Below are positions 38,466 to 55,317 of a stretch of DNA of 64,000 nucleotides, in pieces. Position 1 is the first letter of the stretch; each line of letters opens with the position of its first letter. Both the position numbers and the translations under genes were made by a program. The notes under the pieces were generated by a model. It was given only the letters and a program-made list of their open reading frames with translations, had not been told where the DNA came from and made no database searches. The DNA lies in the sequence record PP942979.1; one strand, given 5' to 3'.

Positions 38466-39722
38466 ATGTCATTCGATATGCGCCAGAACGTACTCATGGT
38501 TCGCTCTTTGATTAACGGCCAACCGTTCTATTATTTCTACAACGCAGAAGGCCTGGAGTTCAGCCTGTCTGGTTACCAGCTTAAAGAGATTTATGATCGT
38601 CACTTTGATGGTCGTATGTCTGCTGTCACTACTTACTGGGGCTTCACAAACAAGCCGAACTATGAGTCTTTCGAGTTTGCGGATAACGGTGACTTGTTGT
38701 GGCATGTTTCTCTGAATGCTGTGTGTCACACGTATCTGCCTCTTGAGATGGTTATCGGTCATGAAGGCTTCAACGTGATTAACGGATTCATGATCGAAGA
38801 TCACAAACGCATGGTGATGAAGATTCATCAAAAGGCAGTGGGTCGTAGCGTTGAAAAACTTACATGGTTCCATGATATGTCCGAAGAGCGTATGCGTGAA
38901 ATGCTGAATGCTCTTGGTCACGGTCCGCTGCGTATTGAACGTGCTGATCGTGAAGAACTGATTAAGATTCATCGGGACTGGCAGCGTAAGCACGACGAAG
39001 AATTTAAATACACGCACAACGCCTGTGGTATTGATCCGGAAGACAAACTCCCTGCTGACCTGTACGACGATCACGGCAAGTGGTTGCGCCAGCGGCACAT
39101 GGCAAAAGGCAAAACGCTTGAGATGATGGCCAGCGAACTTGCGAACATCGTCCGCATCTTTGACCTGTACATCGGCGATGATGACTTTGACCACATGAAT
39201 CCGGATTGGGACGAAGGTCTGCGTCGTGTTGCTCAAGCATTCATCTACGGGCCTAACGCCAAAGAGCGTTTCGATGAAGTGAAGTATAATCCTCAATTCG
39301 TTGTCAATGGTATCTATGCGTTGGCGAAAGACTTGAACTGGATTCATGTTAACGAAGAATCTCAGGACTATAAAGAGTCGTTGATTCGTCGCCTGATGCA
39401 AGAACTGAAAAACGAAGTAGAACGGCCGGACGGGGTGTTCGTTCTTGAAGACGGTGTAGTAATGTTGAAAGCTGCCTTGGCAGTAGCGAACGCAGAAGAG
39501 GAAGAAGAAGAAGAGGACGATGATTCTTCCGCTCGCGCAGAAGTGCGTACCTACCTCGAAGGTCTCAGTGAAGAAAAGCTGCGTACAGTAGCAATTGATC
39601 ACAAGCTGGCCAAGAAAATGAAGATTGCCAAGATGGCCAAGAGCGAGCTGGTGGACTTGTGTGCTGACTATTTCGGCTCAGACTTTCCTGAGGACGAAGA
39701 AGAGGAAGAAGAACACGAATAG
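38466..39722 (+). CDS. Hypothetical protein with acidic tracts and a C-terminal shared two-helix module
   Basis: AGGAG RBS; LSEEKLRTVAIDHKLAKKMKIAKMAKSELVDLCADYF is homologous to modules in 43057 and 52837. Confidence 0.8.
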   Translation: MSFDMRQNVLMVRSLINGQPFYYFYNAEGLEFSLSGYQLKEIYDRHFDGRMSAVTTYWGFTNKPNYESFEFADNGDLLWHVSLNAVCHTYLPLEMVIGHEGFNVINGFMIEDHKRMVMKIHQKAVGRSVEKLTWFHDMSEERMREMLNALGHGPLRIERADREELIKIHRDWQRKHDEEFKYTHNACGIDPEDKLPADLYDDHGKWLRQRHMAKGKTLEMMASELANIVRIFDLYIGDDDFDHMNPDWDEGLRRVAQAFIYGPNAKERFDEVKYNPQFVVNGIYALAKDLNWIHVNEESQDYKESLIRRLMQELKNEVERPDGVFVLEDGVVMLKAALAVANAEEEEEEEDDDSSARAEVRTYLEGLSEEKLRTVAIDHKLAKKMKIAKMAKSELVDLCADYFGSDFPEDEEEEEEHE

Positions 39723-39791
39723 CCTGAAAGAACTAATTAAACACGCAACACTTTAATCTTCCAATCATACCTAACATTGTAGGGAACAAAA

Positions 39792-40214
39792 ATGAAATTC
39801 GAACAAAACATTCTGGTAGTAAATCGCATCGCTCTTATCATGAACGACGAACTGGTGCAGAAGTGGGGTGATGCAGCAAACGCTGATCGTAATGCTACAG
39901 CGTATGCAACTGCAATCATTCTCGCCAAACTTCAACAGCGCGTGTCCGTCGCTCTGCATACCGAGAATCCTGAGGCGTGTGCTCGTCCTGAATTGCTCTG
40001 GACAGACTACGGTTCTATTTCGGTAAGCGGCCTGTTTATCATCGCCTCTACTTCGGATAAAGAGGTGCTCAATCACTACGAAGACCATGACTATCTTAAT
40101 CATCTGCACACAATCAAACGTGTAGCGGAAGAGAACGGATTTAAGTTAACGGTCGTTCCTGTGAAAGCGAACTTCCCGTTCTCTAATACTGAAATCCCTG
40201 CCAGTATGAAGTGA
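39792..40214 (+). CDS. Hypothetical protein (140 aa)
   Basis: AGGGA RBS. Confidence 0.7.
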   Translation: MKFEQNILVVNRIALIMNDELVQKWGDAANADRNATAYATAIILAKLQQRVSVALHTENPEACARPELLWTDYGSISVSGLFIIASTSDKEVLNHYEDHDYLNHLHTIKRVAEENGFKLTVVPVKANFPFSNTEIPASMK

Positions 40215-40222
40215 GGTGATCT

Positions 40223-40522
40223 ATGAAGCGTGAACACATTCCGATGATCGATGCCGCTATCGTTTTAACGATGGAAGAAAGTCGTAGCTTTATGGGTCAA
40301 CGCCCTGATGGCTTTGTCTATCTGCCGAGCAAGGAAGCACTGGAGAAGTTCGAAGCGCATATTCAGAAGCACCGAAGCTATGACAGCTACAGCACTATCC
40401 TGCACCGCGAGCTTCACGCTATCAGCGCTGAGGGCGTCGATGCGCTTACTGCTGATATTGAGCGCGATTCAAGCAAGCCCTGGATGTGGTCAGACGTAGA
40501 CTACCGTATCAAGCTGTGGTAA
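40223..40522 (+). CDS. Hypothetical protein (99 aa)
   Basis: GAGGTG RBS. Confidence 0.7.
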   Translation: MKREHIPMIDAAIVLTMEESRSFMGQRPDGFVYLPSKEALEKFEAHIQKHRSYDSYSTILHRELHAISAEGVDALTADIERDSSKPWMWSDVDYRIKLW

Positions 40523-40530
40523 GCAAATAA

Positions 40531-40575
40531 CTGGTCAAAATGACGGTAGTATCTGAAACCGCATTATGATATACT
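40531..40575 (+). promoter_or_regulatory. Conserved phage promoter P8
   Basis: GCAAATAA-CTGGTCAAAAT box 39 bp before TG-A-TATACT. Confidence 0.8.
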
Positions 40576-40628
40576 AGAAGCGTAGCGACTGCTGCGCTTT
40601 TTTAACTTATGTCTGAGGAGACAACAAA

Positions 40629-41093
40629 ATGCTGCAAGAAACTCAAGCCACCCTGTCCGATATCGAACTGCAAGACCGCATGGTAGATGCTGCCGCCCAG
40701 AAACTTATCGAACTGAAACCTGAGTGGGTTGACGTTTGCGCTGCGGCACTTCGTTTATATCTGACCGTGTGCGAACAACTCGGCGGTGAAATTCCTGAAC
40801 TGCGTTTTGTTCACAACTGCCGTCCGACTCGTTTGCAGTTCCGTCTGGCGGAAAGTGTTGAGGGTGAGGAGTTCGTTGCCAACGAACTCAACAAAGAACA
40901 CCAGATGGCTATGGCCGAAGCAATTCTCGATGTTGCCGAAGCAAACGAAGATGGCCACTCGCTGATGGATTTAGCTATCTCCTCTGGTCGTCTGTTCATG
41001 ATTGGTTACGACGGGCTTGCAGGTACGCTTGATAAGATTTGCTTCCGTAGTCATAAAAAGAACTACACCATGAATCTGGTTAAAGAGGCTTAA
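40629..41093 (+). CDS. Hypothetical protein (154 aa)
   Basis: GAGGAG RBS. Confidence 0.75.
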   Translation: MLQETQATLSDIELQDRMVDAAAQKLIELKPEWVDVCAAALRLYLTVCEQLGGEIPELRFVHNCRPTRLQFRLAESVEGEEFVANELNKEHQMAMAEAILDVAEANEDGHSLMDLAISSGRLFMIGYDGLAGTLDKICFRSHKKNYTMNLVKEA

Positions 41094-41094
41094 C

Positions 41095-41751
41095 ATGAAA
41101 CAGGAATACACTCTGCTTAAACGAAGCAAAGTTGATGTTAATCGTTTTGCTTTCGTGTGTGATGGCGAGGTGGTAGCCAACTTTACTGCTGGCCAGTTGT
41201 TCGTGACAATGCAAAAACTCAAACACGCCGACGCTATTAAAAACGTCGATGTGCTCTGGCGTGACGGTACGCGCACAGTTGAAGAACTGCGTGTGGTTGA
41301 GCAACGACGATTTATTCAATTCGATATGCTCGAATATGAGCATTCGATTTGCTTGCTGATGCGAGCACAGGGGCTGCCTGTTGAGTTGTCCGTTCCTGTT
41401 GACGTGCGCAAGCTGTTTGATAAGCATGGACCGTTTATCACAGAAATTCGTGTGCCGTCAGAACTCGTTGCTGATCTGCATCCTGCTTTAGAGCGCTTCA
41501 CTCCAGACGAAGACGACGATATGGATGAAGACTTTGATGAAGACGACGAAGCGGAGGATATGGATGACACTGACTTTGGCTTCCGTCCAGAAGACATTCG
41601 CCAGCAGTTAGGTGATTTTAACTATCGCTCACCGGATTGGGTTGTTACTATGACTGATGTTCAGGTGGATGAAGTAAATCATCTTGAAGTCGGCATCGAC
41701 CCTGACATTGAACTTCCTCGTGCGGCTGACGCGAAGGACGAATTTTTCTAA
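41095..41751 (+). CDS. Hypothetical protein with an acidic tract
   Basis: GAGG RBS. Confidence 0.75.
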   Translation: MKQEYTLLKRSKVDVNRFAFVCDGEVVANFTAGQLFVTMQKLKHADAIKNVDVLWRDGTRTVEELRVVEQRRFIQFDMLEYEHSICLLMRAQGLPVELSVPVDVRKLFDKHGPFITEIRVPSELVADLHPALERFTPDEDDDMDEDFDEDDEAEDMDDTDFGFRPEDIRQQLGDFNYRSPDWVVTMTDVQVDEVNHLEVGIDPDIELPRAADAKDEFF

Positions 41752-41942
41752 TGAAAAGTACAAACGATTTGGTCAAAGAGTTACGCAGACACGGCCAGCT
41801 TACTATTGACGAGCGCGAGAAGCACTTGCTGCCAGATTTGACGTTCACGCTTGATTGCCTGTGTATCACATACAAGAAGCGGGAAGTAGAGACTACCAAG
41901 CGTGGTCGTGTCATAACAATAAAATTGACCACCGTTCATTAA
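41751..41942 (+). CDS. Hypothetical protein (63 aa)
   Basis: TAATG coupling. Confidence 0.55.
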   Translation: MKSTNDLVKELRRHGQLTIDEREKHLLPDLTFTLDCLCITYKKREVETTKRGRVITIKLTTVH

Positions 41943-42087
41943 CAATCCAGAGTTTGGCTCGCCCGTCCAGAAATGCTCAATTCCCCAAGTGAGGTGCTTC
42001 GCGCAGAAGCATGACGGTGCGGGTCCTTTTTGAAGCGTACTAATCGAGTGTGTTTCACAAAGAACCCAAAACAAACAGGAGGCTGTT

Positions 42088-42480
42088 ATGAAGTTTAACG
42101 ATGTGAGTAAAGATGCTCAGGTCATTCTTATGGGCGCTGCACTTGCTGGCGTGATCGAAACGTTCGGACGTGACGCCGAAGATGAAGGCAAGCAGTTGAT
42201 TGAAACTGCGTTGCGCCAAGTCGGTTTGACGTTCGACGAGTTCCGCGTCCTGATGACCGAAATCGCACCTGAAGTTGAAGCGGAAGTTGCGTCTGTCCAG
42301 ACAGTAGTTGCTGATCCGGACGATGACTTCGAGGACGAACAACTGGACACAATGGAAGAACGTCCAGGCAATCTGAACGATGATGGGCGCACTGATGAAA
42401 ATGGCTGGCAAGATCTTGACGAAGATACTGTGTGCCAGATGTGCGGCAAAGAACACTGCGAATGCAATCGCATAGGGTGA
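42088..42480 (+). CDS. Acidic hypothetical protein with a C-terminal CQMC..HCEC motif
   Basis: AGGAGG RBS. Confidence 0.75.
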   Translation: MKFNDVSKDAQVILMGAALAGVIETFGRDAEDEGKQLIETALRQVGLTFDEFRVLMTEIAPEVEAEVASVQTVVADPDDDFEDEQLDTMEERPGNLNDDGRTDENGWQDLDEDTVCQMCGKEHCECNRIG

Positions 42481-42484
42481 TCAA

Positions 42485-42697
42485 ATGAGCCGACGCCCAA
42501 CGCAAGATGAAGTGAACGGCCAGATAGCTGCCTCAGAAGAACAACGCTATAGCGAGCGTGAGGCTCAATATGCTGATTGGTCAGATGACGATTTACGCAA
42601 TGCGCTGTTAGAGAACGGTCTAGTCTTTGATGACGACGACTTGGACGACTACAGCCGACAAGACTGTCTCAGACTGCTTATGGGCAGTGGCTACTAA
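42485..42697 (+). CDS. Small acidic protein with a HeH-like module
   Basis: WSDDDLRNALLENGLVFDDDDLDDYSRQDCLRLLM. Confidence 0.65.
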   Translation: MSRRPTQDEVNGQIAASEEQRYSEREAQYADWSDDDLRNALLENGLVFDDDDLDDYSRQDCLRLLMGSGY

Positions 42698-42705
42698 GCA
42701 AAAAT

Positions 42706-42750
42706 CTGGACAAAATGACGGTTGTCTCAAAACAGCGTCCGTGTTAGAAT
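42706..42750 (+). promoter_or_regulatory. Conserved phage promoter P9
   Basis: CTGGACAAAAT box, TTGTCT -35, 17-bp spacer, TG-T-TAGAAT. Confidence 0.8.
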
Positions 42751-42756
42751 ATAGAT

Positions 42757-42867
42757 GTAGGGCGCATATCGTGAGGAGTGCGCTCTATATGCGAATGACG
42801 CGATTCGCAGTACGAGAGAAGTTCTTGACCGTGTGTTTTCGTTTTTCCCGGACACACGGTCCTTTTT
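42757..42867 (+). ncRNA. Candidate small RNA (about 110 nt) between P9 and an intrinsic terminator
   Basis: Hairpins TAGGGCGCA/TGCGCTCTA and GCGAAT/ATTCGC, terminator GACCGTGTGT/ACACACGGTC with a T run; no normal-sized gene in the unit. Confidence 0.5.
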
Positions 42868-42951
42868 CAAGTGCCTTCGAAGTTTGAGGGTGCTTGCGAA
42901 AGGGTAGATACTCTTTGAACACTGCCAGCTATCTGGGAAGTATGCAGAAAA

Positions 42952-42997
42952 CTGGACAAAATCGTGGTTGTTATCTGACGGCCACCTGAGCTATACT
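42952..42997 (+). promoter_or_regulatory. Conserved phage promoter P10
   Basis: CTGGACAAAAT box, TTGTTA, then TATACT at +40; followed by a GACGC/GCGTC hairpin. Confidence 0.75.
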
Positions 42998-43056
42998 ATA
43001 TGCAGACGCATTGAGCGTCGCAAACAACATATCACTTATACTGAGGAGTATTAAAC

Positions 43057-44664
<1,608 letters not shown>

Positions 44665-44752
44665 GTTCGACCTGTAATACAAAACACTGATGATAGATGC
44701 GGTTCAGACAGAGCCGCATCTCTGACAACTAAGCTGATTGAGGAATCACACT

Positions 44753-46018
44753 ATGTCAAACGCAAACAAAATCCTGTTAAACGCTCGTGTTCGTCGTCTG
44801 GACGGTACTGTAACTTTCATCAACAAAGTAAACGCGAACGGATATAGCACCGACGCGAAGGGACCTCAGATCCCGGTCAAGCGTCTCGTAGTCGCAGGCA
44901 AAACTCTGAAAGAGATTGAGTCGCCGTTCTCGAAAGAGGAGCACGTAATCGTGCAGGGCGTATCAGTCAAACTGAATAAGCGCCAGCAGCGTGAACTTGC
45001 TGATGGCTCGCTCGATGTTAAGTCTTTGAACCCTGACTTTGGTAAGCTGGTCTTCATCGACCCTGAAACAGGCAAAGCGACTGACGGGAAAGCCGTGAAG
45101 TCGAAAGCGAAAGCGAAAGATAAAGACGGTGTGAAAGCGGGTGTGAAAGCTACTCGCCAGCGCAACAAAGATACGCGCACTAAGAAAGAACGTAAGGCAG
45201 AAGTCGCTGCGTCAAATGACGAGCTGGACATGTTGCCGTCTGATAAGATTGATCGTAAAGCAGAGCTGGCCGGTATCATCGACGCGACTGTGGCTGATGC
45301 GACAACCAAAGAACGTCGCAAGCTGTTGTCCGAAGCGTTCGATATGGACTGGAAAGATGTGAAGAAGCATGGCGGTAAAGGCGTCATCAAACATCTGGGC
45401 CGCAAAGCCGCGCAGTCTGCTGTGAATAAACTGAATGCTACCGTAACGCAGGATGCTTTCATTAAGCAGATGCCTGTTGCGTTGAAGCGTCTGATTCAGG
45501 ACGGTACGTTGACGCTTAACAGAGCGCAGATTGAGCGCGTACTGAGTGCGCTTGACCTCGACGTGAAGTTCTACAACATTGCTATGCAGACACTGTTGGG
45601 CAATCTCAAGCTGTCACTCGACCAGTCTGTCGCTGAGCCGAAAGCTGGTAAGAAAGTGAAGAAGGTGAAGAAAGCAAAAGCTACTTACGCCTCAGAGAAA
45701 GAGCAAAAGCGCCGTGTTAAGAAAATGAAACACTCGCTGATTGCTCCGCCGAAGAAAATGCTGAAAGAAGCGAAGGCCCATATGAAAGCTGCCAAAGCGG
45801 CTATCGCACAAAAGCTGGGTATCTCTTCGAAAGAAGTTCAGCGGGGTCTGCTGGTGTATCGTGCGAACGGCGATGAACTGATGTTTGTTGCCTGTGATAT
45901 GACGGGCCCTGTGTTCATCGGCAACGACGGTGAAGTGGCAGTGATTGCCTACGCAAACGTAGAGACTGCCTTCGACTTCACTCTGAGCAAAACCTCTGAA
46001 CTGGACGCCACTGTATGA
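44753..46018 (+). CDS. Lys-rich multi-module protein, paralogous to 43057
   Basis: GAGG RBS; N-terminal LDGT..I....NGY...KEIE and C-terminal AIAQKLG..G...CD.TG match domains of 43057. Confidence 0.85.
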   Translation: MSNANKILLNARVRRLDGTVTFINKVNANGYSTDAKGPQIPVKRLVVAGKTLKEIESPFSKEEHVIVQGVSVKLNKRQQRELADGSLDVKSLNPDFGKLVFIDPETGKATDGKAVKSKAKAKDKDGVKAGVKATRQRNKDTRTKKERKAEVAASNDELDMLPSDKIDRKAELAGIIDATVADATTKERRKLLSEAFDMDWKDVKKHGGKGVIKHLGRKAAQSAVNKLNATVTQDAFIKQMPVALKRLIQDGTLTLNRAQIERVLSALDLDVKFYNIAMQTLLGNLKLSLDQSVAEPKAGKKVKKVKKAKATYASEKEQKRRVKKMKHSLIAPPKKMLKEAKAHMKAAKAAIAQKLGISSKEVQRGLLVYRANGDELMFVACDMTGPVFIGNDGEVAVIAYANVETAFDFTLSKTSELDATV

Positions 46019-46398
46019 CAAACAATGAAATTCTTTTGTCAGGTATGTTTGCTCAACTGTATGCGCGGCTGATGACGGCCGCTGTATTGAAAACCCACGT
46101 GTACTACTCTGACTTGGCGCCGATTGTGTTCGGCGTCCAACTGTCGGTGATTAGCAGTGCGCAGTACGATGCTCTGTGGTCGCTTGTAAAAGAAACCATG
46201 AGCGTCGATATAGCTCACGGCAGGCCACCGCTTGCTGCGTTGTATGTATCAAGGGCATCTGATAGCAAGCTGCCTGCTAAGAAGTTCTTTCGTGAGTACC
46301 ACAAGCTCACGGGCAAGAATTTGTCAGAAGCTGAATGGCAAGCACTCGTCGAAAATGTGTGGGAACACTATCAACCAAATCTTCGGGGTCTTGTATGA
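46015..46398 (+). CDS. Hypothetical protein, possible winged-helix (YYSDLA...RPPLAALYVS)
   Basis: ATGA coupling. Confidence 0.65.
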   Translation: MTNNEILLSGMFAQLYARLMTAAVLKTHVYYSDLAPIVFGVQLSVISSAQYDALWSLVKETMSVDIAHGRPPLAALYVSRASDSKLPAKKFFREYHKLTGKNLSEAEWQALVENVWEHYQPNLRGLV

Positions 46399-46856
46399 AA
46401 AAGTCAAAGGTCACAATCAGTCGGGGAGGCTACAAACCCTCCTCGCAAGAAGAGGCACAAAAGCTGGTGGCCGAGTTCATTCTTGGTACCATCGGTATCA
46501 ACCCTACTGTTATCAGTCAGCAAATGCTGTTGAACGTTGCGAACTATAACTACCTGACTTCTATCGCCGACACTGGAAAAGCTAATCAAGCGAACCAGAG
46601 CGCATTGCATAAAACTGTAAAAGAACTTAATGCGTTCTGTAGATTGCACAAGATCTCGCTGGGATTACTAATTATGCCGCATACGTCTGCCAGCGATTAT
46701 GCTGGTGACGAGGTTGTAGCGATTCCGTGGGAGCATGTGCAGAAAAACGCATTGAGCCAGTCGGCCATCACATCTCTGTTTGAAACAGTTGAAGCTGATG
46801 GTTATCCGCAGTTTGTGACTGATGCGAAAACAGTAGAGGGATACAATGTTCTATGA
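46395..46856 (+). CDS. Hypothetical protein
   Basis: ATGA coupling. Confidence 0.65.
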   Translation: MKKSKVTISRGGYKPSSQEEAQKLVAEFILGTIGINPTVISQQMLLNVANYNYLTSIADTGKANQANQSALHKTVKELNAFCRLHKISLGLLIMPHTSASDYAGDEVVAIPWEHVQKNALSQSAITSLFETVEADGYPQFVTDAKTVEGYNVL

Positions 46857-48126
46857 TCACGTATTCAACCACGACGAAAAGCAATTGCTTCTGTCGGTGG
46901 CTGAGTCTAAGTATCTGGTGCGGCTAGACTGCCCAGATTATTTGAAGAAGTCGAAACACGCAATTGAAGTTCGTCATACCGTAACCAACCGCGGCGAGCA
47001 ACGCCGTAGCGGAACAATAACAACTGCGTTTGTGCCTCGTATTCATTCAGCAACCGTACAGCGTTTGGTGCGTGAAGTGCGTGACACTCAAAGCAAAAGC
47101 GCGTCGTCCAGTCTCGCTGCACTATTCGAGCTTGGACTTGGTGTACCGAAGCAGCACGATATTGCGGTATACCTGAAAGACTACTGCCAGGAAAATGATA
47201 AGAAGGGTGTGGGTATCAAGTATATCCGCAAACTGATTAACGAGTACCATCGCAAGCACCGCCATAGTTTTGCAGGTAGTCGCTGGCTGATGCCTGCTGC
47301 GTATACAGCGAACATGCTGAACATGCAGTCCTTCATTCATCTGAAAGAAGGTGGTTACTCGAAGAAAGTGAAGGTACCTGACGGCATTCCCGTTGTGTTC
47401 ATCTATCAGAACACGAACCACGAGAAAGCAACCTTTACTTTGTGTGACGCATTCACGATAAGCCCGCTCGGCTATCCGATGCCGTTCGCGCAAATAGCTT
47501 TACGACCTGAGTTCAAAGCTGCACCGAAAGAGTTCAAGTCGAAAGCACTTCGTGGCAGAAGCATGTACGCGATGGTTATGGGCGTTGTCTACTGGGGAGA
47601 AGGTGATGCGCTTGATAACTTCCGCGAGCTACAGGAAATTGACGATGACCCGTATCTGACGTTGCTGACTAACGACAAGTACGCTGATCGCCGTAGCCCT
47701 GAGTATCAGGAGCTGCTGGACCAGCGCATTGCGTTAAACGAACAGGCGCCAAAGTGGAACGAGATTATTGCGAAGTATGGCAATACAACTCGCGTACTCA
47801 AGCCTGAGCAGGCAGAAAAGCTGGAGCAAGCAAACGAGTTCTTCCAGCAGCGTAAAGAGTTCATGGACGCTTTCGACAAGTTCGAAAAGAAAGAGAACCA
47901 TCACGCTGCGAAGCAATTTGCTGCGGCCAAAGCGCTGTTTGCTGCCGTTGATTGTGGCACTATCATGGACCGCACAACGTACATGTCAGTGTCGTCCGGT
48001 CTTGACGATGTGAACAACATTCTCACCAAGTGGGGATTCACTACAGTCAACACTGTTAATAGTAGTTTGAAGAAGTCTATCCTTACTTACGACCGTAAAG
48101 GCGCAAGTCGCGTCTGGTCCCTGTAG
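46846..48126 (+). CDS. Hypothetical protein (426 aa)
   Basis: GAGGG RBS; long ORF. Confidence 0.75.
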   Translation: MFYDHVFNHDEKQLLLSVAESKYLVRLDCPDYLKKSKHAIEVRHTVTNRGEQRRSGTITTAFVPRIHSATVQRLVREVRDTQSKSASSSLAALFELGLGVPKQHDIAVYLKDYCQENDKKGVGIKYIRKLINEYHRKHRHSFAGSRWLMPAAYTANMLNMQSFIHLKEGGYSKKVKVPDGIPVVFIYQNTNHEKATFTLCDAFTISPLGYPMPFAQIALRPEFKAAPKEFKSKALRGRSMYAMVMGVVYWGEGDALDNFRELQEIDDDPYLTLLTNDKYADRRSPEYQELLDQRIALNEQAPKWNEIIAKYGNTTRVLKPEQAEKLEQANEFFQQRKEFMDAFDKFEKKENHHAAKQFAAAKALFAAVDCGTIMDRTTYMSVSSGLDDVNNILTKWGFTTVNTVNSSLKKSILTYDRKGASRVWSL

Positions 48127-48153
48127 ACAACATATCTGAGGAGATAGTACAAC

Positions 48154-51100
48154 ATGTCTAATAATAACCTGGGCGCTGCTGCATCATTTGGTACCGAGAC
48201 GCAAAAGCAAATCGCTAACGAACAGCGCCGCGCTAATTCGTCTGAGAGCGGTCATGTGAACAAATGCACCATCGTTGTTCTGACTGCGTTGAACGCGCAT
48301 AACCGTTTCTCGTATCTGAGCGCGGACGAACAACTCTGTGAAAAGCCGATTGAAGGCAAAGTAATGGATCGTCTGCCCAACCTGATCGAACGCGCATCTG
48401 GCGCGTCGACCGACCAGAACAGCGCGTACTACATTCTGCATCCGAACAACGGCGTACCGACTCGCATCGACGAGCGTATCAAAGTGGGTGAAGGTGACGC
48501 GGTCATTATTTCGTATACTGTAAATAAAGCAGTGTCAGAGATGCACGGCAGTTTGTCTCTCGCATTGTTCAGTGCGGGCGAAAGCGACCTTGCAGACCTG
48601 GCCGCCGAGTTTGGTATTCACGCCATCTCGATTGTTGAAGAAAGCAAAGCTGGTGGTTATATTCAAGCGCTCGCCGCACAGGTAGAAGCTCTGAATATTG
48701 TAAATATCACAAGCATTGATGAAACTGACGGCGCTCTCGATAAAGCAGTAATCGACTACAGCGCGTTGCCGGCCAATCCTGTTACTGTGCTGTCCGGCGC
48801 TGTGCGTACTTTCATCATGCAAACTATTAGCAGCGAAATCGTTGCTGCAATTCCAAATAACGGAGAACTGAACGTGAAACAACCTACCAACTCAACGCCT
48901 GTCGATCTGAACGAAGACTTCGACGCAGAAGACGAAGTTGTTGATCAGCAGGACGGCGGTGAAGACGAAGCTGCGGTCGGCACGGACCTGTTTGGCTACA
49001 AGGCTGAAACGCTGAGTGTCGAGCAAATGTCCGAAGCGCTCGAAGCTATCGACTACGATCTGTCTGCTATGGATGAAGACGGCATCCGCGAATCGTTCGA
49101 AACTGAGCAGGCCATCTGGCTGGCAAAATCTGATGACGCCGCTGCCGACGACGCGGACGACGCCGAAGATGAAGAAGAGGAAGAAGAGGACGACGAAGAC
49201 GAAGAAGGCTTCGACGCTGTTCAGTTCCTCGCTTCTCTGCTGATGGCCGAAGACTTCGACCGCGATGCGCTGAAAGTTCTGGTCCGTACTCAAGACCTGA
49301 AAGTAATGAAGTCGGACACTGTTGAAACTCTGTCTGCTAAACTGCTGGAGCTGGTCGAAGGCGCAACCGAAGAAGAGATGTTTGAACTGATCAACACCTT
49401 CGTCGGCGCGCTGCAAGAGCGTGAAATCGAATGCCCGAACATGCTGGCAACTATCGCTGAGGAAGAAGACAGCGAAGAAGAAGATGCCGATGAAGAAGAC
49501 GGCGAAGACGAAGAGGAAGATTCTGAGGAGGAGGAAGATGAAGACTCCGAAGAAGAAACCGAAGAAGAAGACGGTGACGAACTGCAAGACCAGATCGAAG
49601 CTGTTACCGACCCGCTCGACTACTTCCAGTTCCCGGGCGGCGCTCTGTCTGCTGAACAACGCATGGCTGCTGTTGAAGCTATGGGCGAAAACGTTGAAGG
49701 TCTGACTATCGTGCAGGTAATGAAAGCGTTCACTCGCATTCAGGGCCAGACCAACGAAATCGCGGTAGAAGAAGACGCCGAGCTGTCTAACGTTGAACAA
49801 CTGACTGCGCTGCTGGGCCAGTACGACGAAGCGACCGTGCAGCACGTTGCTGAAAGCCTGGGCATCCTCGTTGACGAATGCGAAACCGTTGACGAAATGA
49901 TCGAAGCGATTGCAAACGGCGGTAACGAAGATGACTTCGCTGCTGTTGAAGAAATCGCAACCAACTACGGTGTTGACCTGTCCGAAGTTGCTGACGGCGA
50001 GGAGCTGGACTTTGTTGACGCTCTGCTGGCAGTGCTGCCGTCGTTCCTGAACGATGATGAAGTTGGCGAGCAGGACGAAGAAGAAGACAGCGAAGATGAA
50101 GAAGACGCTGACGACGAAGATGAAGATGAAGTCGAAGCTGCTGGTGATGCCACTGCTGAGAACGATCATCTGAAATTCGTTAAGTCCGTTGATACCTCCA
50201 ATCGCGTCGGCCCGATGCTGACTGTCGATATGGACCAAACGCTGATCATCAACTTCACTCTGACCGACGGTGATACTTACGCACCGATTGAAAGCGAACT
50301 GTCTGACATTAACGGCTTCAACTACCGCTACCCGTTCAACCTGGGCAAAGCTGGTAAAGCACCGGGCGCGATGCACCTGCCGGCGCAGTCTCTGCTGGAT
50401 ATCATTGAGCGCACCAGCACCACGCGCTTCATGGCTAACCCGGCAACGTTCGATGTTGCAGCCTGGGCGGAAAGCCTTGAAGCAACTCTGGAAGATGAAA
50501 TCGCATCCTCTCTGTATGCCGGTCGCATCGAAGAAGGTCTGGACCCTACCGAAGCCGGTCTGATTGTCGGTGACTTCATCGACGACGAAGAAATGCAGCA
50601 GGCAAGCGAACTCGGTTACATCGACGCTGACCAGTTCGACGAGCTGCAAGGTGATCATCTGCCGATTGCTGGTCTGTACAGTGCTAAGTCTCGCGTTCGT
50701 CCGGTGCAGGTTGATACTGCTCACGTCGCGCTGCACACCACTGTGATGAACGTCGCTGTTCCTGGCTTCTGGGGCGACTCTGATGTTTCTCTGCTGGTGC
50801 AGGCTGCTGTTAACCGCGTTATCGCTCTGGCCGGTACTGTTGAAAACATCCGTGTGTACGCTGGCTTCACGTTCGAATCTGCCGCACTGCTGAACAACGA
50901 CCGCCTGTTTGCTGCGCTGACCGCTCTGCGCACCATGGAAGGCGTACAGTCTTACTCTGCTGCTGACGCTGCAAACTTCGACGACGCCGAAGACGTAATC
51001 GAAGTAGCAAGTGCGCTGGACACCCGCGACCTGCCGCTGTCTATTCTGTCTGGTGGTCTGGCTGCTGCAACGTTCGATAACGGCGGTGACCTGACTGTGC

Positions 51101-51162
51101 TGGTACAGTGTTCTCCGGAAGACGAAGAGTCCGAAGAAGAAGACGAAGGCGACGACGAGTAA
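48154..51162 (+). CDS. Very large, extremely acidic protein (1002 aa)
   Basis: GAGGAG RBS; multiple D/E tracts alternating with short helical modules; folded N- and C-terminal regions. Confidence 0.85.
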   Translation: MSNNNLGAAASFGTETQKQIANEQRRANSSESGHVNKCTIVVLTALNAHNRFSYLSADEQLCEKPIEGKVMDRLPNLIERASGASTDQNSAYYILHPNNGVPTRIDERIKVGEGDAVIISYTVNKAVSEMHGSLSLALFSAGESDLADLAAEFGIHAISIVEESKAGGYIQALAAQVEALNIVNITSIDETDGALDKAVIDYSALPANPVTVLSGAVRTFIMQTISSEIVAAIPNNGELNVKQPTNSTPVDLNEDFDAEDEVVDQQDGGEDEAAVGTDLFGYKAETLSVEQMSEALEAIDYDLSAMDEDGIRESFETEQAIWLAKSDDAAADDADDAEDEEEEEEDDEDEEGFDAVQFLASLLMAEDFDRDALKVLVRTQDLKVMKSDTVETLSAKLLELVEGATEEEMFELINTFVGALQEREIECPNMLATIAEEEDSEEEDADEEDGEDEEEDSEEEEDEDSEEETEEEDGDELQDQIEAVTDPLDYFQFPGGALSAEQRMAAVEAMGENVEGLTIVQVMKAFTRIQGQTNEIAVEEDAELSNVEQLTALLGQYDEATVQHVAESLGILVDECETVDEMIEAIANGGNEDDFAAVEEIATNYGVDLSEVADGEELDFVDALLAVLPSFLNDDEVGEQDEEEDSEDEEDADDEDEDEVEAAGDATAENDHLKFVKSVDTSNRVGPMLTVDMDQTLIINFTLTDGDTYAPIESELSDINGFNYRYPFNLGKAGKAPGAMHLPAQSLLDIIERTSTTRFMANPATFDVAAWAESLEATLEDEIASSLYAGRIEEGLDPTEAGLIVGDFIDDEEMQQASELGYIDADQFDELQGDHLPIAGLYSAKSRVRPVQVDTAHVALHTTVMNVAVPGFWGDSDVSLLVQAAVNRVIALAGTVENIRVYAGFTFESAALLNNDRLFAALTALRTMEGVQSYSAADAANFDDAEDVIEVASALDTRDLPLSILSGGLAAATFDNGGDLTVLVQCSPEDEESEEEDEGDDE

Positions 51163-51174
51163 TATCGTCTGATT

Positions 51175-51203
51175 GAGTGGCTCGAAAGGGCCACTCGCTT
51201 TTC
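51175..51203 (+). terminator. Intrinsic terminator
   Basis: GAGTGGCT-CGAAAG-GGCCACTC followed by GCTTTTC. Confidence 0.7.
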
Positions 51204-51219
51204 TTGGGGATCTGTAAAC

Positions 51220-52047
51220 ATGACACAAGAAGTAGACCACGGAGCTAACATCGTCCGGATGATTGGTGAGCGTGACGAAAAAATCCATACGCTTACTAGC
51301 GAGCTTGCAGAAGCCGTAGGTGATAAGAAAGACGTGGAACACGTTTTAGAGGATGAGGTTCACAGCAACACAGTGTTGCGTGTCGCCCTTCAACGTAAGG
51401 TTCGCCAACACGCCACTGAAATCGCTCTGCGTGATGAACGCATTCGTGAAGTTACTGGATTCTGCAACGAGCAGACCGAAGAAGTTCGCGCTCTGAAAGC
51501 TGAACTCGAATCTGTAAAGAGTAAGCAAGAAGCGGCAAACCCGCTGCCTTTTGCTCTGCATATGATAATGTGTGCTGGCATCAACCACTACTACACAATC
51601 GTTATGCAACTCGCACACGGTACTGTAAATCGTGAAACGAATCGGGTAGCGCGAGACCTTGCCGAGCAGAACAAGTTGGACACGGTAGGTAAACAGCCTT
51701 CGCTGTACCGCTCTGTTGCAATGTATTGCTCTGCTGCTGGCACTGACGTACCAACGGGTGCAACGTTGCGTGAATCGCTTAAAGCTCACATCGAAGCAAA
51801 TATTGACCTGTTCTTGAAAGACCCGCAATTCGAAATCTCTCGCTCAATGTTACGCCTTGTGTGGGAAGCGAATAAGAAAGCGGCTCATATGGGTTTCGGT
51901 GCGAATAACATCTGCCGCTCATTCAACTGGATGCCTGCCGCAGAAGTTGGCAGTCTTGAAACGCTGGATGATGAAGACGACTACGAAGAATTGTTCTGCG
52001 AGTCGCTTCAAACAATTTGTTTCGATTTGATTAATCATAGCTTTTAA
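51220..52047 (+). CDS. Hypothetical protein with an N-terminal coiled coil
   Basis: Heptad-rich N-terminal half. Confidence 0.7.
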   Translation: MTQEVDHGANIVRMIGERDEKIHTLTSELAEAVGDKKDVEHVLEDEVHSNTVLRVALQRKVRQHATEIALRDERIREVTGFCNEQTEEVRALKAELESVKSKQEAANPLPFALHMIMCAGINHYYTIVMQLAHGTVNRETNRVARDLAEQNKLDTVGKQPSLYRSVAMYCSAAGTDVPTGATLRESLKAHIEANIDLFLKDPQFEISRSMLRLVWEANKKAAHMGFGANNICRSFNWMPAAEVGSLETLDDEDDYEELFCESLQTICFDLINHSF

Positions 52048-52142
52048 TAATCTGTAAAAGTTACCTGTAATCGAAACTGTAAACACTAATTGAAGTTCGA
52101 ACCGAGCGACAAGCTCACATTTATAAATACCGGAGCATTACA

Positions 52143-52688
52143 ATGGCTAAAGCATCAAAGACCACCTCACTGGCACCTACCCTGGCTTCTCGCATCGCTA
52201 AAAAATCTGGTTCTATCAGCACTTCTAAAGTTAAGCCAACTGACCTGCCGCATGACATTCTGATCGAAGCTGTTCAGGCTGTTGAGCTGATTGGCTTTAT
52301 CACCGACCGCACCGATAACAGCGTAACCATTCGTCACAAACGTGGTCACGGTTCTTCTGCTCAGATCGTTTCTACCTTCGGCCCGAACCAGTTGCTGTCT
52401 GTGCTGGGCGAAGCTGGTTCTCACGGTAGCGTAGTTGCTCAAATCAACGCGCCGGTTCGTGAGTACAAAGGCTTCAACGTTAAATATGTCGGCCCGATGA
52501 TTCACGCGACCTCTGTTGAAACAGGCGAAGTGGTTCACATCAACACCGCACTGCCGGGCTTCACCGTTCGTGCAACTGTAAACGAAAACGCGGCCGCTAA
52601 AAAGTACGGCATCGCTGCTCCGGCCAAAGCCAAGAAAGCGGACAAAGGTGACAAGTCTGCGAAAGTGGCTAAGAAAGTAAAAAAGTAA
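52143..52688 (+). CDS. Basic protein with Lys/Ala tails and a beta-rich core
   Basis: GGAG RBS; C-terminal APAKAKKADKGDKSAKVAKKVKK. Confidence 0.8.
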   Translation: MAKASKTTSLAPTLASRIAKKSGSISTSKVKPTDLPHDILIEAVQAVELIGFITDRTDNSVTIRHKRGHGSSAQIVSTFGPNQLLSVLGEAGSHGSVVAQINAPVREYKGFNVKYVGPMIHATSVETGEVVHINTALPGFTVRATVNENAAAKKYGIAAPAKAKKADKGDKSAKVAKKVKK

Positions 52689-52836
52689 TAAAGTCTGACG
52701 AAGACTTTTAACTGACTTTCTGAAATCTGTAAACATTAAGTATGCAGCGAGATAAAATGTTCTCGCTGCCTGTATCTCGAATCTGTAAATCTTAATTGAA
52801 GCAACATCGCTTCTACTCAAACAGGAAAAACAAATC

Positions 52837-53634
52837 ATGGCTAAAGCTGCTAAAGCAACCGTAAACACCGCATCTCTGGTTCTGGCTAAAATGCTGGGTG
52901 TTGTAGTGGAAAACGCGACTGATAAAGAAATCGCTGCGCTGCTCGCATCTGCCGGTCTGACCGTGTCTGGTGGCAAAGTTGTTAAAGCTGACAAGGGCGG
53001 TAAAGCTGCTAAAGGCAAAAAGGCCAAAGCACCTACCGTCGCTGAAATCGTCGCTGCTGTGAAGGACGAAGAAGAACTGGACATCTCCGGCGTCGATGAA
53101 GACACTCTGCGCGAAGCAGTTGTCAAAGCCAAGCTGTCTACCGCTAAGAAAGCTAAAGCGCTGGACGAAGACGACCTGCGCGATCTGCTGAACGAAAAGC
53201 TGGGCGGCGAGTCCGATGAGGACGAAGACGAAGAAGAAGAGGACGACGAAGACGAGGACGAAGAGTCCGACGACGAAGATGAAGACGGCGACGACGAAGA
53301 CGACGAAGACGAGGACTCTGATGATGAAGAAGAGGACGAAGACGACGAAGACGAAGACGGCGACGATGAAGACGAAGAGGACGACGAAGACGAGGAAGAT
53401 GAAGACGAAGACGAGGATGAAGACCTCGACCTCGACTCCCTCGACGAAGACGAACTCCGCGCGCTGGTAATCGAGCACAAGCTGGCGACTGCCAAGAAAG
53501 CGAAAAAGATGGACGAAGATGAACTGCGCGAACTCTGCGAAGAACACTTCGGCGGTGAAGACGACGAAGACGAAGAAGAAGACGAAGACGACGAAGACTT
53601 CGACGATGAAGACGAAGACGAAGACGACGAGTAA
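52837..53634 (+). CDS. Bipolar protein: basic N-terminus, two copies of the shared two-helix module, long D/E tracts
   Basis: AGGA RBS; modules at 53092-53202 and 53440-53550 separated by a tract of more than 70 almost pure Asp/Glu residues. Confidence 0.85.
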   Translation: MAKAAKATVNTASLVLAKMLGVVVENATDKEIAALLASAGLTVSGGKVVKADKGGKAAKGKKAKAPTVAEIVAAVKDEEELDISGVDEDTLREAVVKAKLSTAKKAKALDEDDLRDLLNEKLGGESDEDEDEEEEDDEDEDEESDDEDEDGDDEDDEDEDSDDEEEDEDDEDEDGDDEDEEDDEDEEDEDEDEDEDLDLDSLDEDELRALVIEHKLATAKKAKKMDEDELRELCEEHFGGEDDEDEEEDEDDEDFDDEDEDEDDE

Positions 53635-53850: not shown

Positions 53851-54399
53851 ATGTCTAAGAAAATCATCAGCGGCCTGAACAAAGAAATCAAAGCCCTGGA
53901 CAAATCTGAAAAAGCTCTGGTTAAAACTGCTGCCGGTCTGAACAAAGAAGCCGAAGCGATTGCTGCACGTCGCGAAGGCCTGGCTGCTCAGGTTGAAGCA
54001 CTGGCGAGCGGCGGTGACGCTAAGCCGGCGAAAGCTGCTAAAGCGACCAAAGCTGAAAAAGCTGCTAAGCCTGCTAAAGCAGAAAAAGCTGGTAAGAAAG
54101 CGAAAGCTGAAAAGCCAGCCAAAGCTGAAAAAGCTGGTAAGAAAGCCAAAGCAGAAAAACCTGCTAAAGCTGAGAAAGCCGCGAAAGCTGAAAAGCCTGC
54201 TAAGGCAGACAAAAAAGCTAAAGCTGAAAAGCCGGCCAAAGCCGACAAGAAAGCTAAAGCTGAAAAAGCTGCTAAGCCTGCCAAAGCTGAAAAAGCTGGC
54301 AAAAAAGTAAAAGCTGAAAAGCCGGCCAAAGCTGATAAAAAAGCTAAAGGCGCGAAAGCGAAGAAGCAGGAAGAAGACTTCGACTTCGAAATGGAATAA
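53851..54399 (+). CDS. Histone H1-like (AlgP/Hc-type) Lys/Ala/Pro repeat protein
   Basis: AAGGA RBS; N-terminal coiled coil, 8 KPAKA(E/D)K repeats and an acidic-aromatic tip EEDFDFEME. Confidence 0.8.
   Translation: MSKKIISGLNKEIKALDKSEKALVKTAAGLNKEAEAIAARREGLAAQVEALASGGDAKPAKAAKATKAEKAAKPAKAEKAGKKAKAEKPAKAEKAGKKAKAEKPAKAEKAAKAEKPAKADKKAKAEKPAKADKKAKAEKAAKPAKAEKAGKKVKAEKPAKADKKAKGAKAKKQEEDFDFEME
54022..54360 (+). repeat. Coding tandem repeats (KPAKAEKAGKKAKAE-type units)
   Basis: Eight KPAKA units with synonymous variation. Confidence 0.9.
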
Positions 54400-54432
54400 G
54401 CAAGTAATCGCGCACTAGCGGTCACTTGATTG

Positions 54433-54497: not shown

Positions 54498-54992
54498 ATG
54501 TCTGCTGAACATCTGCTTAACGACGACCTACCTGACGATACTCGCCCACTGAAACCCACTCCTGATTCTGCCAAGCCTTCTTACTTTGACCTCGTGTCTC
54601 TACGCTTAGAGGCTGCTGGTCGTCTCGCACGTTCTCTCAAAACTCTCAAAGACGCTAACGTATTCGGTGATGACAATACCATCGCCAAAGATCTCATGTT
54701 GAAAAAGGCTCTGGAGATCGCAGAGAACTACTGGGCAGAGATCTGCATGGGTCTAGTCCCTGTTAAAGACTCTAGTGGAATAGAATCACTGCGCGACAAT
54801 CTGCCTGCGTGTGTCGAAGCCTTCCGCATCGTAGTCATGGAACATGCTCAACGTGAAGCATTGGAGCGTGAGTGTCGTAACAAGATTGACCACACAGGTG
54901 GCTTCAAGCTCCTCACTCAGCCTCAAGTGCTGCACCTCGAAAACAAACACGTCTGCAATGGAGATTGCGATCATGGCCCAGAAGCTGTCTGA
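54498..54992 (+). CDS. Hypothetical protein
   Basis: GAGGT RBS before ATG 54498. Confidence 0.7.
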   Translation: MSAEHLLNDDLPDDTRPLKPTPDSAKPSYFDLVSLRLEAAGRLARSLKTLKDANVFGDDNTIAKDLMLKKALEIAENYWAEICMGLVPVKDSSGIESLRDNLPACVEAFRIVVMEHAQREALERECRNKIDHTGGFKLLTQPQVLHLENKHVCNGDCDHGPEAV

Positions 54993-55317
54993 GCAAATCA
55001 ACCGCTATTTCAATCTCATGGAGAAAATCCGTGAGCAACTGTTTCGCGTTATGCCTGTATCTGACCGCTATTTGTGTATTGTCAGTTTCAGCACGAACCA
55101 TCAGGCGATGATGTGTGATCTCGTTAGCAAAGAAAGCCTCATGCCCGCAAAGCTGCTTGATGGTCTTACCGGACAAGAGCTGGTGACGTATGGCAGTATT
55201 AAGCGAGCTGTCGAAGACTGGGTAGCTGATGGTATGCAAGCTGACTTCCCTCTCAGTCAGAGCGATGACGTATACGCTGAATACAAGAGCTTAACACGCG
55301 AACCTGACATAAACTAA
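54973..55317 (+). CDS. Hypothetical protein
   Basis: GGAG RBS before ATG 54973. Confidence 0.65.
   Translation: MAQKLSEQINRYFNLMEKIREQLFRVMPVSDRYLCIVSFSTNHQAMMCDLVSKESLMPAKLLDGLTGQELVTYGSIKRAVEDWVADGMQADFPLSQSDDVYAEYKSLTREPDIN

Follow-up and report, generated by a model that had tools for sequence, protein, structure and literature searches.

Three otherwise unrelated acidic proteins of Erwinia phage phB78, namely gp296, gp304 and gp312, have in common a previously unnamed two-helix mini-domain of about 38 residues, which is referred to here as the module. The stretch analysed (the window) comprises the last 64 kb of the phage genome, i.e. positions 197825-261824 of record PP942979.1, with which it is identical in sequence; coordinates given below are those of the window. 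The module is conserved, predicted to fold and portable, and it resides in acidic disordered regions of proteins linked to phage DNA metabolism. We tentatively propose, with a confidence slightly below even, that it acts as a portable docking domain, anchoring its carriers on phage DNA or nucleoprotein via what would be a binding basic connector.

phB78 is a 262-kb Alexandravirus, a jumbo phage with Erwinia amylovora as its isolation host, and is grouped with Y3, Yoloswag, the Dickeya AD1/JA phages, PaBG and NCTB in the 'hairy' jumbo myovirus lineage (PMC6143709, PMC7412058). Genes in the window lie on the plus strand throughout, and nearly all of those near the modules are annotated as 'hypothetical'. 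The gene set of the phage includes a sigma factor, a single-stranded DNA-binding protein (SSB; gp231), a UvsX-like recombinase (gp232), a DnaB-like helicase and a topoisomerase II, and the module carriers adjoin the topoisomerase II and DnaB genes. A multisubunit RNA polymerase is absent from the phB78 annotations, and the phage is therefore considered not to be nucleus-forming.

Four copies of the module in phB78

An earlier, sequence-only reading of the window had listed four alignable peptides in at least three different acidic proteins. All four are exact translations at the positions collected in Table 1, with one copy each in gp296 and gp304 and two in gp312, and outside the module no mutual similarity is found between the three proteins. 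Since matches of a seed hidden Markov model (HMM) to its own members are circular, leave-one-protein-out HMMs were chosen. These recovered gp312 at E=3e-15, gp304 at E=1e-6 and gp296 at E=4e-4, the held-out carrier being the top non-training match every time among the 728 open reading frames (ORFs) of the window. The alignment also stood out from composition-matched shuffles, a comparison set beforehand: pairwise Smith-Waterman scores of the six pairs, each against 5000 shuffles, gave z-scores of 3.2-16.3 (13.1 for the gp296 copy against the second gp312 copy), with four of the six scores never attained and the weakest pairs attained in 48/5000 and 5/5000 shuffles. Independent PHROG models cross-match as well, confined to the module regions, as seen for phrog_30618 on gp296 residues 343-417 (E=1.4e-11). 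The genome-wide HMM search, suggested along with the initial reading, was carried out in six frames over the whole 262-kb genome (2941 ORFs) and returned only these four copies and no further one.

As had been claimed, tracts of aspartate and glutamate (D/E) lie beside the module in all four cases. These flanks are extremely biased in composition, and the conserved positions of the module are mostly hydrophobic-core residues, two points which would fit a module of no specific function, its copies either resembling each other merely as charged low-complexity sequences that tend to form helices, or serving only as structural spacers in acidic tails. Chance is, however, rejected by the composition-matched shuffles together with the leave-one-out HMMs. 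A 20-residue window of at least 80% D/E occurs in 7 of 1533 phB78 ORFs, and since five of these seven most acidic ORFs lack the module, it is not a by-product of acidity. The copies furthermore share only 42-66% identity at the DNA level and can thus be considered old and maintained.

For the second copy of gp312, AlphaFold modelling based on a 36-sequence alignment yielded a mean predicted local distance difference test (pLDDT) score of 85.9, with helices at positions 8-17 and 31-42 and a short turn at 23-28. The independent model of full-length gp304 places a helix at residues 504-513, a turn at 519-523 and a second helix at 527-534 in its C-terminus, at a pLDDT of about 90. Over 72 distinct copies, L7, L16, A22, L30 and L33 as well as M/L25 are near-invariant, and the conserved polar feature is the Lys-rich connector (positions 19-24).

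The carriers differ in their layout outside the module. gp304 is predicted to consist of an N-terminal beta-barrel (residues 1-77), a Lys-rich disordered linker and alpha/beta domains at about 150-310 and 358-452, with a poly-Glu tract of 40 residues (43993-44112) between the alpha/beta domains and an acidic linker ahead of the C-terminal module. The mean pLDDT of this model is 71, with 80-92 in the folded parts. A Foldseek search with full-length gp304 returned no significant and no OB-type match; the scattered Tudor/SH3/KOW-like matches (probability <= 0.44) are probably due to the N-terminal beta-barrel. A common small beta-barrel is also seen at the N-termini of gp304 (43057-43290) and the adjacent gp305 (44753-44930; blastp E=8e-4, 29% over 52 residues), and the two proteins are probably paralogous at this end. 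In gp312, a conserved N-terminal region of 93 residues with a Lys-rich stretch is followed by the first module, a linker, the second module and a tail, where linker (76 residues, 53209-53436) and tail (53557-53631) are poly-D/E. Besides their acidic regions, the carriers hold Lys/Ala-rich tracts.

Table 1. Module carriers, module copies and related or neighbouring genes in the window
Feature	Position	Strand	Remarks
gp296 (SHZ78_296, 418 aa), carrier 1	38466..39722	+	N-terminal domain of ~340 aa, acidic tract, module, acidic tail
Module copy, gp296 residues 367-403	39564..39674	+	acidic tracts on either side at 39495-39524 and 39681-39719
gp303 (70 aa)	42485..42697	+	marginal variant, acidic connector
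gp304 (535 aa, phrog_33433), carrier 2	43057..44664	+	AlphaFold model
Module copy, gp304	44560..44661	+	extreme C-terminus of the protein
gp312 (265 aa, 47% D+E, phrog_30618), carrier 3	52837..53634	+	
Module copy 1, gp312	53092..53202	+	kept in all relatives examined
Module copy 2, gp312	53440..53550	+	nearest of the copies to the family consensus
gp313 (182 aa, 30% K, 30% A, isoelectric point 10)	53851..54402	+	directly downstream of gp312
gp315 (114 aa)	54973..55317	+	short form; ~255 aa in relatives (Y3, SNUABM_7)

Conservation and distribution of the module

Relatives compared were Yersinia phage fHe-Yen9-02, Yoloswag, Y3, SNUABM_7 and Alexandra, and alignments were built from IMG/VR loci. 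Orthologues of gp312 carry two module copies and orthologues of gp304 a C-terminal module in 5/5 divergent relatives. A metagenomic gp304 homologue (P0004) holds an additional internal copy. Between the two modules of gp312, the acidic linker varies from 50 to 76 residues across orthologues, whereas the modules themselves are conserved. Gain and loss are visible in the gp296 family, where the N-terminal ~340 residues are common to gp296 and its orthologues Alexandra gp317, Y3 gp308 and SNUABM_7 gp318, and the C-terminal extensions differ. The module is present in phB78 and Alexandra, with about 110 residues added after it in Alexandra gp317, while the Y3 and SNUABM_7 orthologues have other C-termini and no HMM match; in Y3 gp308, a different helical segment plus an acidic tail take its place.

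A profile of the 38-residue core was searched against 1.84 billion representative proteins at E <= 1e-3 and gave 30 matches. Four of them were discarded as false positives (P0025 and P0030 with helix-turn-helix repeats, P0010 and P0028 with unrelated repeats), so that the family is a rare one of about 26 clusters. In cultured phages, it occurs solely within the Erwinia/Dickeya/Yersinia/NCTB jumbo lineage (58 records), and it is additionally found in metagenomic phages. Pfam, NCBIfam and functional PHROG hold no assignment covering it.

Two of the metagenomic carriers begin with a domain of known type. In P0026 (L040:7544-8470), a DUF669 domain (E=2.6e-13) is followed by the module, and in P0007 (L037:8001-9320) four to five copies come after a DUF669-type domain (phrog_3724, 1e-16); both genes are part of a conserved polA / PD-(D/E)XK / AAA_24 / DUF669 cassette. 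Phage proteins of the DUF669 type are SSBs whose C-terminal tails are acidic and flexible (PMC4889955), and one of these proteins binds single-stranded DNA and promotes recombination by its AAA partner (PMC13687109). The tails of P0007 and P0026 are unusually long, with Lys/Pro-rich blocks alternating with acidic blocks and one to five modules, and in P0007 a small beta-rich domain beyond the repeats forms the end of the protein. P0009, in which the module occurs twice, is encoded between polA and a RecA/UvsX-type recombinase gene, near a clamp loader. A match to the DUF669 (PF05037) OB-fold domain is found in none of gp296, gp304 and gp312. For P0005, an assignment of the N-terminal domain as T4 gp32-like was considered and found unsupported by PHROG, NCBIfam and PDB sequence searches.

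The portability suggested initially is thus borne out by non-homologous carriers, by orthologues with and without the module, by copy numbers of one to five and by the fusions to DUF669 SSBs elsewhere. Taken together with the constancy of the modules across linkers of changing length, the occurrence of only about 26 clusters in the global search argues further against an origin in acidic low-complexity sequence or a mere spacer role, so that we regard the absence of a specific function as very improbable.

Candidate variants and neighbouring genes

Beyond the four copies, the sequence-only reading had named three further proteins of the window. No HMM match was obtained for gp245 (12683), the first proposed acidic-loop variant, nor for gp309 (48154), in which weaker copies had been suspected, and hhalign gave P=0.12 and P=0.15, respectively, so that both proposals were dropped. 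The second acidic-loop variant, gp303, is a marginal case, in which helix 1 is matched and the full module is without support: the HMM match (E=0.03) covers helix 1 only, and profile-profile hhalign yields P=0.0018 over 16 columns at 15% probability. Judging from its orthologues, gp303 apparently is a deletion derivative of a 240-270-residue protein that ends in a similar two-helix element in relatives, retaining just ~30 residues from the N-terminal and ~40 from the C-terminal end of the longer protein found in Alexandra, SNUABM_7, Yoloswag and Yen9-02. As a homologue of the C-terminal part of these longer proteins, one of which, Alexandra gp324, matches the module HMM (E=0.008), gp303 is a plausible, not an established, divergent relative of the module.

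A fourth carrier family exists in relatives as a protein of ~255-270 residues encoded downstream of gp312. It contains one or two divergent copies in its C-terminal half (E about 1e-5 to 5e-3), the half which is missing from gp315, its short form in phB78.

Directly downstream of gp312, gp313 displays histone-H1/AlgP-like Lys-Ala-Pro repeats, encoded by tandem DNA repeats of 18-90 nt, a coiled-coil-like segment at the N-terminus and, at the C-terminus, a conserved acidic-aromatic tip (D/E-D-F-D/E-F-D/E-M-E). The gp312-gp313 gene pair is conserved in 5/5 relatives, and gp313 may be regarded as a candidate partner with which gp312 would associate.

Several other features of the region were noted. 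The gene for gp303 is followed by a 360-nt non-coding gap (42698-43056) with two promoter-like sites. gp309 (48154-51162) is a conserved protein of 1002 residues (phrog_36461, 24.5% D+E) with four poly-D/E tracts, in which neither the module nor a known domain was detected, and a strong terminator-like hairpin with a 10-bp stem lies 3' of its gene at 51174-51197. A scan of 37.5-56 kb for promoters and terminators revealed no enrichment compared to shuffles (13 vs. 14.3 and 24 vs. 20.2). gp302, a helical and acidic protein of 130 residues with a Cys-rich end, was considered as an AAA_24 protein, in parallel to the AAA_24/DUF669 cassette, and this match was rejected as spurious (E=0.0045, 17 bits vs. 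27).

Poly-D/E tracts amounting to about 100 residues also occur outside the window, in gp135 and gp132 of the phB78 head module. Their genes are sited between the major head protein gene and that of the maturation protease, an apparently scaffold-like layout, and the annotation of gp135 as 'ATPase' may be wrong. Acidic internal and scaffold proteins occur in large myoviruses. The carriers could therefore be imagined as packaged internal head or scaffold-type proteins, with the module as a capsid-targeting or DNA-contact element in the virion. However, these acidic head-module proteins do not contain the module, while the genes of its carriers lie with those of DNA metabolism in the opposite transcription block, at a distance of about 130 kb from the head genes, and carriers elsewhere are SSBs in replication cassettes. 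A virion role is consequently considered very improbable, too.

Proposed function and relation to known families

The helix / extended connector / helix fold class assumed for the module in the sequence-only reading agrees with both AlphaFold models, with superposition on a SAP domain and with viral structural neighbours. The best superposition on a solved structure was obtained for the SAP domain of Hcc-1 (2do1; template-modelling (TM) scores 0.68/0.60, root-mean-square deviation 3.2 Å, Foldseek E=5.6), and many of the viral neighbours are annotated as Rho_N (TM 0.6-0.74). In comparisons with the Pfam profiles of SAP, LEM, Ish1 and Rho_N, weak matches recurred, of which none attained its threshold. 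SAP (PF02037) reached 20.5 bits at best compared to a gathering threshold of 23.9 (E=3.6e-4, P0018), with further weak matches in one of 20 copies (E=9.5e-4) and in P0013 (E=0.0051, over the full model, positions 1-37); Rho_N (PF07498) reached 14.1 bits compared to 24.9 (E=0.047, P0008). LEM (PF03020) weakly matched 5 of 20 copies with a best E of 0.023, again below threshold, and Ish1 (PF10281) gave 17.3 bits for gp303 (E=0.006) and 15.0 bits compared to 26.6, with E=0.033 for a canonical copy. Weak matches to DUF6472 and EAD7, which are not helix-extended loop-helix (HeH) families, were about as frequent as the HeH ones. From models and profiles we conclude that the module belongs to the HeH fold class and lies outside every named family, each single line of evidence being sub-threshold.

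The module is read as an autonomously folding mini-domain that has been shuffled among otherwise unrelated, strongly acidic and largely disordered phage DNA-metabolism proteins. In the docking model, it would be displayed as a docking unit on flexible acidic tails, tethering these proteins at sites of replication and recombination through its basic connector. The poly-D/E tracts may serve as flexible spacers and, at the same time, compete for or chaperone basic DNA-binding proteins, with the adjacent H1-like gp313 and host nucleoid proteins as candidate targets. DNA or nucleoprotein is favoured as the target because of the fold class, the conserved basic connector and the SSB and Lys-rich carriers, and additionally because the module spans phages with different replication proteins.

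Several observations weigh against this proposal. The net charge of the module core has a median of -3 over the 72 copies (range -10 to +4), i.e. it is mostly acidic, and such a core between poly-D/E flanks disfavours simple DNA binding and is atypical for SAP-type binders. The Foldseek E-values underlying the structural comparison are non-significant throughout, 48 residues being too small for significance. The module does not reach the Pfam gathering threshold of any named HeH family, hhalign finds no alignment between it and residues 1-50 of E. coli Rho, and a sequence-profile search of the PDB yielded no HeH protein and only chance Nudix matches (E >= 0.16). In gp296, gp304 and gp312 themselves, no recognisable domain, including those of DNA metabolism or SSBs, was found with Pfam, PHROG and NCBIfam or, for gp304, Foldseek, and the literature consulted on phages AD1, PaBG and Y3, including phage proteomics, does not mention the carrier proteins.

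The acidic core is more readily in line with a module that acts as a protein-protein sticker, binding a common hub or itself with no nucleic-acid contact. Several modules with acidic disordered spacers between them would then give rise to a multivalent, condensate-like assembly or attract partners as the tail tips of SSBs do. LEM, which belongs to the same fold class, binds a protein. The presence of two to five copies per protein with variable linker lengths would suit such a sticker, as would the basic neighbour gp313 as a plausible electrostatic partner and the location of the module in the tails of SSBs, classical hubs of protein interaction (PMC4889955). Jumbo myoviruses and small polA/AAA_24 phages, however, have very different replication gene sets, and because these sets differ so widely, a shared specific protein partner is less parsimonious than DNA. 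We consider the sticker explanation, the main rival of docking to DNA, doubtful, though by no means far-fetched.

In a bolder reading, the locus might encode a 'chromatin-like' charge system of the phage, composed of hyper-acidic, HeH-tagged disordered proteins (gp312, gp304, gp296 and perhaps gp309) together with the adjacent histone-H1-like gp313. On DNA, these proteins would build a multivalent assembly of stickers and spacers, in which the module would be the addressing sticker, and which could either organise a replication/recombination compartment without a phage nucleus or strip DNA of basic host nucleoid proteins. This reading appears distinctly unlikely to us.

Independent of its target, the module defines an unannotated domain family that marks 'hypothetical' acidic proteins in a jumbo-phage lineage of plant pathogens and connects them to the biology of SSB tails in unrelated phages. 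Should the module be a docking unit, a tag of 38 residues would offer a handle on what these abundant, featureless acidic proteins assemble on, and acidic tails of the SSB type could be equipped with a folded mini-domain instead of a linear tip motif. If it is inert, the observed distribution amounts to ordinary domain shuffling.

Among known families, SAP domains (Hcc-1/SARNP 2do1, Ku70, PIAS, DEK) resemble the module in their length of about 35 residues, in the order of helix, extended connector and helix predicted for it, and in the hydrophobic register L..L....L ... K..L..L. In proteins of chromatin and repair, SAP domains frequently occur together with acidic tracts. For DEK, the combination of SAP and acidic tracts has been reviewed (PMC13088671). 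As read from the consensus, the connector of the module is about five residues longer than that of SAP, Lys-rich and includes a short helical turn, and it centres on a near-invariant Ala in place of the Gly of SAP; the core of the module is net acidic and its setting is a phage rather than a eukaryotic one. Rho_N has the same fold class, and phage proteins annotated as 'Rho termination factor N-terminal domain' are recurrent structural neighbours, but there is no significant sequence relation and the module connector is about three residues longer. In Rho, Rho_N precedes a cold-shock-like OB domain, whereas the module takes a C-terminal position or an internal one between acidic tracts, with the OB domain on its N-terminal side in the DUF669 carriers. 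LEM and Ish1 share sub-threshold matches with the module; in contrast to it, they are eukaryotic nuclear-envelope families with BAF or DNA as partner. In terms of architecture, the tails of SSBs (E. coli SSB-Ct, T7 gp2.5, the T4 gp32 A-domain and DUF669) are likewise flexible acidic interaction platforms, and two members of the module family are themselves DUF669 SSBs with the module in their tail. Known tails of this kind, however, use a short linear motif at the tip, whereas the module family embeds one to five folded mini-domains.

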